Notes: generated by a model from the sequence alone, not told the origin. A DNA stretch of 64,000 nt from Pavona decussata (GCA_977016875.1 CDRNST010000031.1:3348001-3412000), one strand, 5' to 3'. Shown: positions 4,867 through 58,301, numbered from the stretch's first letter. A program made the numbers and translations.

Positions 4867-5467
4867 ATGCATCTCAACTCAAGCGAAAAAGAGAGCATGA
4901 ACTGTTCGCCACATATCGACCCTACAGCGACGTGTTTGTCGCTTGGTAACTCACCCAAAGACCAGTTCGAATTCACAAACTCGCATGACTTTTGGCCGGT
5001 GTTTTCGTTTCCTACTCCACCAACCTCCCCAGTGGAATTCTGCAGCGGCTGCCAAGACGTAACAAAAGAGATGCGATGGCATTCGGCCTTGGGCCCTTGG
5101 GGAGAGCTGAGGGAAATTTCGGACGATGAGCTCGAAGTGGATGACTTTCCGTTTGGCGACTTTGCGCGGGAATTGAACGGGCCGCGCGCCAAATCTCCCG
5201 CCATCCTCAATGACATAATGTGGAGTGGCGATCGAGTCAAGAGGCCAGATTCCACAACGGATTTTTTGGCTCGTTTTAGCTTGGCGTCTGCACCGTCATT
5301 ATTCGACCAAGTGACCAGCCACGCGATTGTTGAACCTGAGGAACTCTTTGCGTGTTCGCTGTTAACCCCTTGCCATGATCCTGAGCAGACCGATGAAGGT
5401 TTAGTGAGAGTAGAGAGCGGTGGTGTCGCTTTTGATTTGCCAGTTCAGGAGCAGTCATCCGACACAG
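4867..5467 (+). CDS. myc: Myc-family transcription factor, paralog A, coding exon 1 (transactivation domain); gene model join(4867..5467,6801..7237), 345 aa
   Basis: ATG at 4867 in aacgccATG context. MBI-like DFWPVFSFPTPPTSP, MBII-like ILNDIMWSG, MBIIIa-like IVEPEELF. Donor GACACAG|gtatat at 5467/5468 (phase 1) joins in frame to exon 2. Confidence 0.9.
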
Positions 5468-6800
5468 GTATATCAGCCAGTTTGCACCTCGCTAACTATT
5501 ACTGTAAGGTGGGAACATGCTGTGAAACTCTGGCCCTTGCATATTCCAACTAGGTTATGAAGAAATCGCGCTAAATGGTTACGCGCGAGTGAGTGCTTTT
5601 TTATTTTTTTCAGATTTGTTTTGTTTTCATGCTTGTCCAGTTTGTTGTGTCACGTGCTCGTAATCGTTCCAAATTTCCTTTAATTGTTTTCATTTGCATC
5701 ACAGTTCAAACTGAGCACGGCAACCATTAATCCGCCACGGCAGTTTCTAATTAAAATATCCTCGGATGTGATCGAACAATGAAACACAACTTTAGACAAA
5801 AGGTTTCGAGCTTTGAGCACCAGTTAGTTAAGCTCCCTAAGATTATGTTCGTATTGTTTGGAGAACACGAGGAAACGTGTTTGTTATGTTTGTTTAAAGG
5901 ATTCCATTTGACTTCTTTCTATCTTAACGAAAATATATCTTTATCTTAGCGAAAGTCAGGACTTTGGTGAAAGTGTCCTTTTTTATTTCTTGATTTGCTT
6001 CCTGGTTTTCAAAGTGATTCATCCTCTCTGTGTGAGGTCACTGAACTGCGAGGACGTGAAATGGCCCTTGAGAAGAGGGATCGGAGTCACAATTGAACAA
6101 AAATATGGTCTCGTCGACTTATATAACTGCCTTTTCGATCAAGCTACGCCACATTTCTCGCCAGTAATAAGCATTATCTTACTTTTTTCTCTCAGAATTC
6201 TCATTTATTTACAAAACTAATGGCAATGGTGAGGCTGAACGACAGTAATATTGTTATGAATTTATGGGTTCAAAAACATCTATTAATTAGATCCTTTACC
6301 AAATAGCCTCTAGCCTCAAATGCTAATAAAGAATTCATGTCTTTGTCTGCCTTCTATGTGAAGCCGTAAGAAACGAAGATAATACAACCCTTAAATGCTG
6401 TTAAATTTTCGTAGAAAAGCTTGGTAAAGTTTGTCTTTTCTAAAGCGCGTGGTTCAATATTTCAGCAGTTTTAGAACTCTTTCTCTTGTCTTTCAATAAG
6501 CCAAGGTTCATTTTGACCTGTGCGAGTCCGTTGGCGATTTTTGTCTCTGTGTGGCATACTTGTGCGTTGCACTTGACTTGACTACAGGGCAATATTTACT
6601 CAGTTTTTGCTTTAAATGGTCTTTCGACGAGGCAATTTGTTTTTATCTCCATACCTTGTTCCCAAAGGACTATCCATAATATTTGAGTGTAAGTTTTCAT
6701 AAAGTCGACAATGTTGTTTTGATTTTGAGGTGCAGTTTACTCGCCAAGCCGGTGTTTGTCATTGTGTTAACACCTTTTGTTTCGTATCATTGATCAACAG

Positions 6801-7237
6801 ACGAGGACGAAATCGACGTAGTGGGAGTGTCAATAGACAAAATACAGAGTAATACCACCAGTAGTAAGCCAGACCCCACCAGGGAGACAGAAGACAACTC
6901 GAATACGGCACCAAGAAAACTCCGGTCGAGAAAAAACAACAGCGAATCGTCAGAGCAGGAAAACGACGATGGAAATGCTCGCATCTCACACAATGACTTG
7001 GAACGAAAGCGACGCAACGATCTACGGAACCGTTTTCAATGTCTTCGCAAATGCATCCCATCGTTAGAAGAAAGCGAGCGCGCCGCCAAAATCACCATTT
7101 TGAGAAGGGCTTCGGAGTTTATTCCTACGCTTCGAAAAGAAGAGGAAAAGTTAATCGCCCTGAAGGACGCTGAAAAGAAAAGGAACGCTGAGCTTTTAAA
7201 CACGCTCACGAGACTAACTAAAAACAAAAGGAGATAA
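6801..7237 (+). CDS. myc: Myc-family transcription factor, paralog A, coding exon 2 (MBIIIb + bHLH-Zip)
   Basis: Acceptor tgatcaacag|AC at 6800/6801. Splice restores SDT-DEDEIDVVGV (MBIIIb). Basic-HLH-Zip [45 protein letters not shown]...L; TAA at 7235-7237. Confidence 0.93.
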
Positions 7238-8180
7238 TTATAAAGAGAACTACCATTGAATACTTTATAAGCTGTTTATAAGATAGGGATTTCGCACAAC
7301 TGTCGATAAACGTTTGTATTGCTAATATAATTTTGTAAGAAAATCTGACACTATTGGTTCTAAAATTTACACCTTTACATTTAACGTGCTCAAATGTTTA
7401 TTGTTCTTTAAACTTAGTTGTAAACTTTGCATACGTTGAAATAGCTTCTTTTTTGGGATACAAATTTTCATGAAATGTTTGGTACATTTTTACCGTGTTT
7501 TATTTTGCTACAAAGTTTTCTATAAACATATCTTTTTACCATTGGGTGGATAACGTATAAAGACATGCAGCGCTTTCTGTTACGTTCGCTAATCACTTTT
7601 ATTCTTGATTTTTATTATTATTTTGCATAAAGCCAAAGTTAAGTAGGCCACAAACAGTGCAATCAGACGAGTATACAAATGTTTTTAACATTACAGTCCG
7701 GATACTTAAATATAAATGCTTGTTAGTTGCTGTTATAAAGGAAGCGTTCGATACCAATAACTGTTTGAATGAAAGCAGTGAGTTATTTCAGATATCTCCC
7801 CGAAAAGCCGTTTTGTATCACGGGAAGCACAGACACGAGCTGGTCGTTAAGGAGCACAAAATATGGCAGTTTTGCAATCAATGGTCAGAATAAGTAACGG
7901 AACTTGTAAGTGCTTCCTTTGTGTCTAGAAAAAATGGCTTTATACTGATCTTTTGAGAGTTCAGTTCACAGTCCCTCTTTGTGTTCCGGAAGCATTCCTT
8001 GTCTTGAAGTGCAGTTAAGACACTGATTTCCATGACTCTATAGTAGCTTCCTTAGTAAAGACTTGTACATACTATCTTTCTTTCTATTCGAATTTCAGAA
8101 TAGCACACAGGATGCTAGAATCTTCGAATGTAAAAGGAAAAAAATTAGCAAAACAAATTTAGAAAAAGGAATGATCTACC

Positions 8181-8181
8181 A

Positions 8182-8226
<45 letters not shown>

Positions 8227-56193: not shown

Positions 56194-56313
56194 GTACGTA
56201 AGACTGAGTAAACAGTCAAGCGTGCAGATTTCTAAGCGCAAAAAAGGAAATGTGTACTTTGAATGGTGGTCGTGTTCTTGCTAATAACCTGTACGTTTTT
56301 TTTCTAATAACAG
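56194..56313 (+). other. Putative 5'-UTR intron of mycC
   Basis: Donor ttg|GTACGT at 56194 (alternative GTAAGA at 56198); branch-like ctaat, T-tract and taacAG at 56313, 13 nt upstream of the ATG. Confidence 0.55.
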
Positions 56314-56326
56314 ACTGTGTTACGAC

Positions 56327-56873
56327 ATGTTTTTCGACGAAAGACTGCGAGGGCCCCAACCCATGGACTCCTCGGCGCCCCAAGATCTGATCGTTGAAAG
56401 CCTCACGGAAGAACTGTACAACCCAACGATCCCAAACGATGATTTCTGGAAAAAGTTTGCCCTCCCGACACCGCCATACTCTCCGGAGAACTATCTGCCC
56501 CAAGCCGGCTCTAAACGGAACTTCGTCATTCCATCGAGGAGAAACGGCCTACAAGTAGTACCAGAGCCTGAGGACCTCTCCTCGGATCTACCTCTGGTGC
56601 TCAGCGACGCTGAAATGGAGCGATTGACGTGTAGCACGATAGATGACGAGTACATTTGGCCGGCTGGCGAGAGTGATTTTGATCGTGTCGAGTCGCAGAG
56701 GTTTCAAGGCAATCGAGTTGTGCTTTCGGCGGCGTGTGTAAACGAACCTAGCGCTGAAACGGCGACCGATCACCGAATGCTACGCGATTTGCCTCCTTTT
56801 GTTGCCGCGGTCACAAACCAAGATCCCACACTCGCCCAGCAACAAGTGGATAGATGGCAGCCACATTACCCAG
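56327..56873 (+). CDS. myc: Myc-family transcription factor, paralog C (divergent), coding exon 1; gene model join(56327..56873,57871..58301), 325 aa
   Basis: MBI DDFWKKFALPTPPYSP; only a vestigial MBII (DDEYIWPAG). Donor CCCAG|gtgaat at 56873/56874 (phase 1) joins in frame to exon 2. Confidence 0.85.
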
Positions 56874-57870
56874 GTGAATATCGCACTTATTTCAATTAGA
56901 TATCGAAATTATTAACTTCGAGGTGTGGGAGTCAAAGTCCGTCTGGCAATTTTTTTCGACCATACAATTTCACTTTCGAATTCTAAATCAGCTTGCCTAA
57001 ACAGCCCATGAGAGTAGTTTCATTGACTTTAGTGACTCTTTAAACTTAGTTTGGTTTGGTTTTACAATCGCGTATAATAGGATAATTTAGTTTGCCTTTG
57101 TCACTTGTGAATCAGTGAAATTTGTTTTTGACTGAAGGCGCGCGACAGCATTTCCTTTGACGAGTTTCACGTCCCTCGCTATGCAACCATAGATTAATCG
57201 AGTTTGTCTGCGCTAAACAGCCTGAATAACAGAGTAAATGTTGACCGGTGATCCTTCTCATTAATGGAGTGTTTAAAATGCACGCTCGGTAGTTTCAAAG
57301 ACGAATTTTTTATTGCTACAGGCTTTGTTTATAAGTTCTTGCAGATTTTCACTTCACACTTGGCGCGTTTTTTGGTAAACTTTGGGCAAATGGCCACAAA
57401 TCACATGAGACTATTTCAAGTGATTTGGCGTTAGAAGATAATTTTACAAAAGCTTGAATCTAGATTGGTGTTTTTAACCGTCCGATAGTTTTCTTTTTGT
57501 CAAATAGAACATACAATCCCTCCTATGACAAGACGTCCTGGGCTAATTAAATCTTATTTTTTTATTTCGAAAACAGAAACGCTTCGAACAATTGGTTCAA
57601 GCAGTTGAAAAGAATCACCTTTGATTCACTATCAACAAATATCTGCCATCCCGCTATTAATTACTCAAGAAGTATCGAGATCTGTTGTTTGCTGTAAATC
57701 TAAGAGAAAAGGTTTGCCCCCGGCCATAGATACAAAAACTCAGCGAACATTTTAACCGATCAGGAATAGGTTAATTATTCGAATTTGCAAATTTCATTAT
57801 TAGGTTGCGCAGAGTAGTGTGGCGTCTTTAACTGATTCCGCTCCATGTTTCTTTTCTTTTTTTTTTTCAG

Positions 57871-58301
57871 TGGAAAATCCAGCGATGAGACTAGCCCGAC
57901 CCCCGAGCGAAGAGTTTGTCCCTCAACGATTCGACTGCGCAGCGTCCAAAAAACCCCGCAAGTCAAGAAGATCAAGTCGCCAGGATTCGCCTCCGATGGA
58001 AGGCGATGGGGATTCCGAAGACAACGAGACAAGCCGTGCAACGCACAACGTTTTAGAAAGGCAACGGAGAGAGGATTTAAAATGCCGTTTCCAGTTTCTT
58101 AGAGACAGTATACCAGAACTGGAAGATAACGACCGCGCATCGAAAGTTCTAATACTGAAAAAAGCGCGCGAATACGTGCATCAGTTGTACTTAGAAGAGG
58201 AACGGTTGTTAGCAGACAAGGAATTAGAACGCCAAAGGCGGCTAATACTCCTAGAGCGACTTGAGTGCTTACGGCAGGGTTACCCTGTAATGCATATGTG
58301 A
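57871..58301 (+). CDS. myc: Myc-family transcription factor, paralog C, coding exon 2 (bHLH-Zip)
   Basis: Long T-tract and ttcag|TG acceptor at 57870/57871. [49 protein letters not shown] plus zipper; TGA at 58299-58301. Confidence 0.92.

Follow-up and report, generated by a model that had tools for sequence, protein, structure and literature searches.

Three Myc genes of the stony coral Pavona decussata as probable members of a head-to-tail array shared with the sea anemone Nematostella

The window described here (the whole stretch of DNA that was analyzed, 64,000 nucleotides in length; G000:C31:3348001-3412000) is from the 602-Mb genome of the stony coral Pavona decussata; its GC content is 39%, and it contains two runs of N. 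On its + strand, six open frames specify three Myc genes, each with two coding exons, that we designate mycA, mycB, and mycC. With high probability, these genes belong to an old Myc array of four members that are arranged head to tail in the order U, mycA, mycB, and mycC; two additional members of the family, mycD and V, are located elsewhere in the genome.

The first coding exon of mycA (4867..5467, +; ATG at 4867) encodes Myc box I (MBI; DFWPVFSFPTPPTSP) and Myc box II (MBII; NDIMWSG) and ends with the donor CAG/GTATAT; the second (6801..7237, +; acceptor TTGATCAACAG) starts with the acidic stretch EDEIDVV that is followed by a basic helix-loop-helix (bHLH)-leucine zipper with the signature of the group, and its stop codon ends at 7237. 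In mycB, the first coding exon (49585..50125, +; donor CCG/GTAGGT) encodes MBI and MBII (KDCMWNG), and the second (50382..50974, +) encodes the acidic/IDVV region and then the bHLH-leucine zipper; the start of the protein is the same as that of the Orbicella protein P0050, MALSVSSLLLESF. The first coding exon of mycC (56327..56873, +; donor CAG/GTGAAT) encodes MBI, an eroded MBII (DDEYIWPAG), and the motif PEDLSSDLPLVLSDAEMERL; the second (57871..58301, +; the stop codon ends at 58301) lacks the IDVV motif and encodes a bHLH-leucine zipper, for which LLADKELERQRRLILLERL is the zipper signature. The splice sites (5467/6801, 50125/50382, and 56873/57871) are GT-AG and in phase 1 in each of the three genes, and local translation of the joined exons yields proteins of 345 (mycA), 377 (mycB), and 325 (mycC) amino acids without internal stops.

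In mycA, mycB, and mycC, the phase-1 intron occurs at a common place and immediately precedes the acidic (E/D)EIDVV stretch (in mycC the stretch itself is missing), and the unlinked canonical gene mycD has the same intron. The vertebrate MYC, MYCN, and MYCL genes also have two coding exons, separated by an intron that immediately precedes the acidic/IDVV region. The mycB junction is seen base for base in a spliced Orbicella transcript contig (L010), and the mycA and mycC junctions are matched by the products of spliced orthologues (P0159 and P0172, respectively). The ratios of nonsynonymous to synonymous substitution (dN/dS) in comparisons with orthologues are 0.10-0.27 for mycA, about 0.07 for mycB, and 0.04 for mycC; mycA, mycB, and mycC are intact and under purifying selection. 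An earlier note on this DNA, made from the sequence, had described three spliced, frame-intact Myc genes on one strand; the GT-AG sites, the open frames, and a Pfam HLH match in each gene bear out that description.

The assignment to the Myc family is based on several features. The second exons match the Pfam HLH family (E-values of 1.6e-13, 3.7e-16, and 1.8e-13 for mycA, mycB, and mycC, respectively); the Myc-type basic region, H-N-x-x-E-R-x-R-R, is present in all three (e.g., SHNDLERKRRN in mycA and THNVLERQRRE in mycC); and all three are placed among Myc sequences in a phylogenetic tree (described below). In the N-terminal halves, MBI, D-x-W-x-x-F-x-(x)-P-T-P-P-x-S-P (the PTPPxSP phosphodegron region), is invariant in mycA, mycB, mycC, and mycD. 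MBII (DCMWSG) is clear in mycA and mycB; only its D and W are retained in mycC, and the sequence in the C gene of Nematostella is NDCVWSEG. When the exons were scanned singly, which lowers the scores, Pfam Myc_N (PF01056) matched mycB with 46.0 bits and mycC with 23.9 bits (the cut-off is 24.4), and mycA had no match; the score for mycD is 97.8 bits. The earlier note had stated that the N-terminal halves align at the Myc boxes alone, and this is what we find, that is, the first exons of the paralogs are only 18-24% identical and BLASTP aligns little past MBI. The divergent segments are themselves conserved among orthologues: the PEDLSSDLPLVLSDAEMERL motif of mycC (with a PxDLS core, PEDLS) and its MFFD start are kept in Nematostella (L008:16796-17330), and the motif is also kept in the coral orthologue P0172; this feature of mycC is therefore ancient and not peculiar to the coral of the window.

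From family membership, the proteins encoded by mycA, mycB, and mycC would function as transcription factors of the bHLH-zipper type, with Max as their partner in binding to E-boxes (CACGTG). Their diverged N-termini, with Myc boxes that are full in mycB, eroded in mycC, and divergent in mycA, may confer different partners and cell-type roles, again as judged from the family.

When the whole genome was searched in six frames with the bHLH-zipper of mycB, six loci of the Myc or Myc-like type were identified, together with one Max-like frame. Four of the six Myc-family loci fall within 64 kb on contig C31, all on the + strand (U, 3342490-3344229; mycA, from 3352867; mycB, from 3397585; and mycC, to 3406301). 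U (L006:25-1764) is a single-exon, Myc-like gene that encodes 579 amino acids with a Myc-type bHLH-zipper and without a match to Myc_N; it ends 3.8 kb before the start of the window and 8.6 kb upstream of the mycA ATG. U, which is located just outside the window, is the fourth member of the array. The U motif ELEIYFPCVLTPIPVDRLYSTLD recurs in the U-type proteins of other corals and, in a looser version, in the V-type gene; in Nematostella, a stretch that is 57% identical to it occurs at the matching place upstream of the bHLH-zipper of its own U-type gene. U evolves fast, with identities of 42-62% among corals. The 10 kb that follow the window and the stretch C31:3328001-3338000 contain no further Myc gene. 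The two remaining loci are V, a single-exon, Myc-like gene that encodes 394 amino acids on the - strand of C31, 176 kb upstream, and mycD, a canonical Myc gene with two exons on contig C18, unlinked to the array.

The same array is present in the sea anemone Nematostella. On scaffold DS469512.1, in loci that are read in reverse and in which all of the genes are on the + strand, we located U (L021:877-1161), mycA with both of its exons (P0160; L021:8502-10288, exon 1 at 8502-8873), mycB (P0062; L008:10001-11439), and mycC (L008:16796-18708); L021 is 2 kb from L008, so the four genes are on one strand, in the coral order, over approximately 40 kb. The second exon of mycC is 66% identical to that of the Nematostella C gene, 51% identical to that of the Nematostella B gene, and 89% identical to that of the Orbicella C gene. 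For mycB, the identities of the second exon are 77-82% with annotated coral Myc proteins (Montipora, Acropora, Oculina, and Orbicella are the best named matches), 58% with Exaiptasia, and 56% with Nematostella; orthologues of the first exon of mycA are 96% (L015) and 58% (L013) identical at the amino acid level.

The cluster in Nematostella was listed in 2007: Simionato et al. (BMC Evol Biol 7:33, Figure 4 and additional file 17; PMC1828162) reported Nem65, Nem34, Nem35, and Nem32 as a physical cluster and described Nem32, Nem35, Nem34, and Nem65 on Scaffold_6 (2,383,264 bp; this is DS469512.1) as having "no putative intervening genes", with Nem66 elsewhere on Scaffold_6 and Nem33 on another scaffold (PMC1828162). 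P0160 contains a 22-amino-acid string of Nem34 exactly, and the orthology is one-to-one (U is Nem65, mycA is Nem34, mycB is Nem35, and mycC is Nem32); from the sequences in the supplement, V is probably Nem66 and mycD is probably Nem33. The earlier note had left in doubt whether such a cluster had been described before; the anemone cluster had been, and we did not find a description of the coral cluster in the literature consulted.

Thus, the coral and Nematostella clusters share the four types of gene, their order and strand, a distant fifth Myc-like gene on the same contig or scaffold, and an unlinked canonical Myc; the coral array is the longer one, with a distance between mycA and mycB of 42 kb, of which 6.3 kb is a young retrotransposon (vide infra), as compared with 22 kb in Nematostella. 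The tandem duplications that produced the array are older than the split between stony corals and sea anemones: for every member there is a distinct Nematostella orthologue, and the anemone genes have the order and orientation of those in the coral.

Linkage is also observed in other corals: Orbicella carries the mycB-mycC pair, U is upstream of mycA in a close relative (L015), and orthologues of U, mycA, and mycB are linked on contigs of the same length in several other coral assemblies. In a distant hexacoral (ERZ25071792, ctg18784; loci L013 and L014, with amino acid identities of 66-68%), the three genes are located within 25 kb; however, mycB and mycC have been turned around together with respect to mycA (in the order mycA, mycC, and mycB, with the latter two on the opposite strand), and the spacing within the pair is kept at 5.2 kb. 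The suggestion in the earlier note of an ancient cluster that has been kept linked is therefore upheld in its essentials, with orthologues, order, and strand shared with Nematostella and linkage found in Orbicella and the other coral assemblies; it requires amendment in three respects: the array has four members, not three, the cluster is already on record for Nematostella, and the orientation is not always kept.

To place the genes, we used a tree calculated with IQ-TREE (LG+C20; 65 bHLH-zipper sequences, 100 columns, unrooted). Each coral gene groups with its counterparts in other species: support is 95/90 for the mycA group (including Nematostella P0160), 99/95 for the mycB group (with P0062), 100/99 for the mycC group (with the gene in L008), and 100/98 for the mycD group; for the U group, which includes the Nematostella gene in L021 and has a long branch, support is 84/86. 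The mycB group has an octocoral sister group. The mycC group includes a subclade that shares diagnostic strings with Hydra21 and Hydra22 of Simionato et al., and the mycC lineage probably predates the split between anthozoans and medusozoans. A 98/94 split places mycB, mycC, and mycD with the Myc proteins of amphioxus, a bird, and Trichoplax and places mycA, U, and V on the other side.

That the paralogs are recent, lineage-specific tandem duplicates, or copies that have been homogenized within species, would fit the tandem arrangement taken alone, and Simionato et al. treated linked bHLH duplicates in Nematostella as lineage-specific (PMC1828162). The sequences refute this explanation. In the approximately unbiased (AU) test, forcing the coral mycA, mycB, and mycC into one clade costs 285 log-likelihood units (p 1e-13), and forcing mycB with mycC costs 150 (p 1e-65), so the grouping of paralogs by species that the earlier note had named as fatal to its claim of an ancient cluster is rejected; the strongly supported orthology groups, the divergence of the first exons, and the far closer resemblance of each coral paralog to its Nematostella counterpart than to its neighbors (e.g., of mycC to the Nematostella C gene than to the B gene) lead to the same result. 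We give almost no credence to a second explanation, that the three-gene arrangement is an artefact of assembly (a mis-join or a wrongly oriented piece at an N run). It draws on the presence of both N runs between mycA and mycB, the second of which is spanned by none of the compared loci, and on the opposite orientation of the mycB-mycC block relative to mycA in the distant hexacoral. N run 1 (13047..13191; 145 N) has continuous flanks, with three contigs (L015, L017, and L018) collinear across it; L018 is 100% identical to both flanks and has exactly 145 nt between them, which implies that this run is exactly sized or masked and is not an estimated gap. For N run 2 (30404..30555; 152 N), no sign of a mis-join was seen, on the basis of the distance between mycA and mycB in a contig of 554,200 bp from the same or a very close coral (ERZ25073751:ctg101407; its stretches L016 and L017 are free of N and 94-99% identical to the window); the part of the window from 17.8 to 34.0 kb, which holds this run, was compared by spacing alone. 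That contig carries the three genes in the order and orientation of the window, with mycC downstream of mycB; its second exons of mycA (460,116, +) and mycB (497,253, +) are 37,137 bp apart. The same spacing is 43,422 bp in the window, or 37,116 bp after subtraction of the 6,306 bp that are extra at the site of the retrotransposon, that is, the corrected spacings agree to within 21 nt. With this match in order, strand, and corrected spacing, and with the same order and strand in Nematostella, the mis-join that the earlier note had envisaged is not seen, and one at either run is very unlikely.

It is also highly improbable that one or more of the paralogs, most plausibly mycA or mycC, is a decaying or nonfunctional copy. 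The absence of a Myc_N match in mycA, the score just below threshold in mycC, the eroded MBII and missing IDVV of mycC, and the lack of direct RNA support from this species would be compatible with decay; the intact frames and canonical splice sites, the low dN/dS values of both genes, the orthologues in anemones and corals, and the retention of the divergent motifs themselves argue against it. Several points do weigh against the interpretation of the window as part of an old, conserved array of expressed genes. In four metatranscriptome libraries (X1-X4), which were compared in the mycA region only (4300-8300), contigs cover the exons and most of the intron alike, are approximately 95% identical, and have no joints, so that they demonstrate neither expression nor splicing; these contigs appear to be genomic or unspliced sequence of a related coral and are unfit as proof of expression. 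Continuity at N run 2 was checked by spacing, and the tree is based on 100 bHLH-zipper columns and has no root. The near-equal spacings between mycB and mycC in four species (vide infra) could be due to chance, and the cause of their retention is something that we infer. Finally, no second Myc gene occurs within 10 kb of the mycB-like gene in the octocoral Dendronephthya (L020) or within 10 kb of the mycC-type gene in a low-GC, probably hydrozoan contig (L022); these two cases, which do not inform about larger distances, neither show nor exclude clustering outside Hexacorallia.

Between the mycB stop and the mycC ATG there are 5352 nt in the window, 5361 nt in Orbicella, 5200 nt in ERZ25071792, and 5356 nt in Nematostella. 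Within this spacer, a conserved non-coding element (core 52716..52843, +; coral-level block 52264-52994) is found approximately 1.7 kb after the mycB stop in both the coral and Nematostella: an nhmmer profile of three coral mycB-mycC spacers matches the collinear site in Nematostella (L008:13114-13239, near 888.9 kb of DS469512.1) with an E-value of 4.6e-13, and none of 20 shuffles matched. The element is single-copy in its own genome and contains the motifs CAGGTG, CAAAAATAG, TTTGTT, and CAGCTG. Seven metagenome contigs carry an exact copy of its 21-nt core; each of them aligns to the mycB 3' flank or to the mycB-mycC spacer, and five of them extend to the coding sequence of mycB and/or mycC. 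We considered and discarded two assignments for this element: as a structured RNA, it has no consensus fold (-8.1 kcal/mol over 161 columns), and as coding sequence, it is interrupted by stops and a 1-nt indel.

We slightly favor the reading that the element is part of a mycB 3' untranslated region (3'UTR) of roughly 2 kb. Contig L026 begins exactly at the boundary of mycB exon 2 and runs into the element, as would an mRNA, and an AATAAA is present at 52951, after the element, with conservation among corals ending at 52994. The alternative, that the element is an enhancer, seems to us to have an appreciable chance of being correct, though one that is clearly below even; it is suggested by the CAGGTG and CAGCTG motifs and by Sox-like and MEF2-like sites in the element. 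For the shared enhancers that the earlier note had considered possible, this element, which may instead belong to a 3'UTR, is the one regulatory hint in the data.

Upstream of the mycC ATG, additional conserved blocks (54742..56326, +) are likely to represent the promoter, a non-coding first exon, and the 5'UTR. In comparison with the distant hexacoral (L014), the identities are 83-89% at 54742-54823 and 54999-55044 and 72% over 55706-56890; the Orbicella C gene model starts at a position that corresponds to ~55,020 in the window, and the Nematostella nhmmer alignment reaches ~470 nt upstream of the mycC ATG. The start of mycC transcription is likely to be near 55,020. If so, transcription of mycC would begin only approximately 2 kb after the likely poly(A) site of mycB, and the transcription units would be tightly packed; a break within the gap would damage the regulation of one of the genes, and the pair would stay together and move as one piece. 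In such a mechanism, mycA and U would be linked more loosely than the mycB-mycC pair.

Whether regulation has held the array together is a separate matter from its age. The genes could be old and orthologous and the linkage passive, that is, the tandem duplicates would simply not yet have been separated, with no shared enhancer or regulatory overlap; we regard this as a serious contender, although we would not bet on it. The distance between mycA and mycB varies freely (from 16 kb in ERZ25071792, where there is an inversion, through 22 kb in Nematostella to 36 kb here without the transposon), a 6.3-kb retrotransposon is present between these genes in this genome, and, exons and promoter-proximal parts aside, just one non-coding element is conserved between coral and anemone. 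The mycB-mycC pair behaves differently: four species, which span corals and an anemone, share its order, its orientation, and a spacing of ~5.35 kb, it has been inverted as a unit, and it encloses both the single-copy conserved element and the conserved blocks upstream of mycC. These observations argue for constraint on at least the mycB-mycC pair. A more specific proposal is that overlapping regulatory sequence has held the pair at a fixed ~5.35 kb over some half a billion years and that U, mycA, mycB, and mycC together constitute a regulatory block of Hexacorallia; we put this forward tentatively and consider it rather doubtful. Were the array such a block, the element at 52716-52843 would be part of that sequence and would either coordinate the two Myc paralogs, whose N-termini are wired differently, or insulate them from each other.

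Between the three Myc genes, we recognized no other host gene. Among 101 stop-to-stop frames of at least 70 amino acids outside the genes and the transposon, just two had Pfam matches, both at chance level, although genes with short exons would escape such a scan; to this extent, the statement in the earlier note that no other recognizable host gene lies between the paralogs stands. The Rfam and tRNA scans of the window were empty, and no conserved block was found between mycA and mycB in comparison with the distant hexacoral.

The interval does contain, along with other repeats, a full BEL/Pao long terminal repeat (LTR) retrotransposon (39816..46117, -) with a gag-pol frame of 1890 amino acids that contains Peptidase_A17, RVT_1, and integrase domains. 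Its LTRs (238 nt) are 100% identical to each other; the element, which is not a member of the cluster, was inserted upstream of mycB at a distance of 3.5 kb and makes up 6.3 kb of the sequence that separates mycA from mycB. The corresponding site is empty in L016; because this contig is from the same or a sister coral and is otherwise 94-99% identical, the insertion is very young and polymorphic. We also observed that the identity to L016 changes sharply at the insertion, from 94.3% upstream of the site (33962-39817) to 99.0% downstream (46117-60974), which is a shift in haplotype divergence.

Near the start of the window, the segment 880-1045 matches the spacer between U and mycA in Nematostella (E-value of 2e-12). 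We rejected it as a coral-anemone conserved element of the array: it is a dispersed repeat, with ~640 candidate copies in the genome at identities of 77-89%. From the Nematostella match, part of this repeat appears to be conserved across orders, and it presumably resembles the conserved core domain of a short interspersed nuclear element (SINE).

In the genome search, the only Max-like sequence was a single-exon frame, and the canonical Max was not recovered as a single reference sequence. This frame (233 amino acids; L007:1123-1824, -; G000:C19 at ~1.91 Mb) has the Max-like basic region RRAHHNALEQKRR and is otherwise divergent; it may be a Max-derived paralog or a retrogene.

Comparison with other Myc families places the array in context. 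Like the coral genes, the vertebrate MYC, MYCN, and MYCL genes encode MBI, MBII, and a C-terminal bHLH-zipper; however, the vertebrate paralogs are unlinked, whereas those of cnidarians arose by tandem duplication and have remained next to one another. In addition, mycA, U, and V fall outside the core group. The vertebrate paralogs are generally attributed to whole-genome duplications.

According to two published accounts (PMC13485128, PMC10177328), Nematostella has six copies of myc, Hydra has four, and scyphozoans have seven or eight; some copies in Nematostella and Aurelia form orthologous pairs, and Myc boxes have been lost repeatedly. Hydra myc1-4 include the Myc-box-deficient Myc3, the gene for which is reported as located on chromosome 2 (PMC10177328). 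The four to eight cnidarian paralogs are expressed at different steps of the stem-cell and cnidocyte lineages (PMC10177328, PMC13485128). Hydra, Aurelia, and Nematostella resemble the coral in having several paralogs, some of which have lost the N-terminal Myc boxes and kept the Myc-type bHLH-zipper; genomic clustering is not described in those accounts, as far as they were consulted. Simionato et al. judged the Myc duplications in Hydra and Nematostella to be independent (PMC1828162). We found no account in the literature consulted of the cluster in corals or of its conservation between orders, and the synteny paper of Zimmermann (2023) does not mention myc.

The Nematostella cluster (2007) and the expansion of Myc in cnidarians were already known; this finding refines known facts and does not describe a new kind of system. 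What appears to be new is the conservation between stony coral and sea anemone, the fourth coral member, U, the near-constant spacing of mycB and mycC, and the conserved element between them.

Myc controls growth and stem-cell behavior in all animals, and its copies in cnidarians are unusually many. Because the coral array is the Nematostella array, the origin of these paralogs moves from duplications in the Nematostella lineage back as far as the last ancestor that sea anemones and stony corals had in common, or further. The names and genomic anchors for U, mycA, mycB, and mycC, with the unlinked mycD and the distant V, can serve comparisons of expression across cnidarians. The spacing of mycB and mycC and the conserved element between them provide a concrete enhancer or 3'UTR target in Nematostella, in which transgenics and CRISPR exist. 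If the array is indeed a regulatory block, it would offer something rare in cnidarians, namely, deep conservation of non-coding sequence that is accessible to experiment and is linked to a proto-oncogene family.

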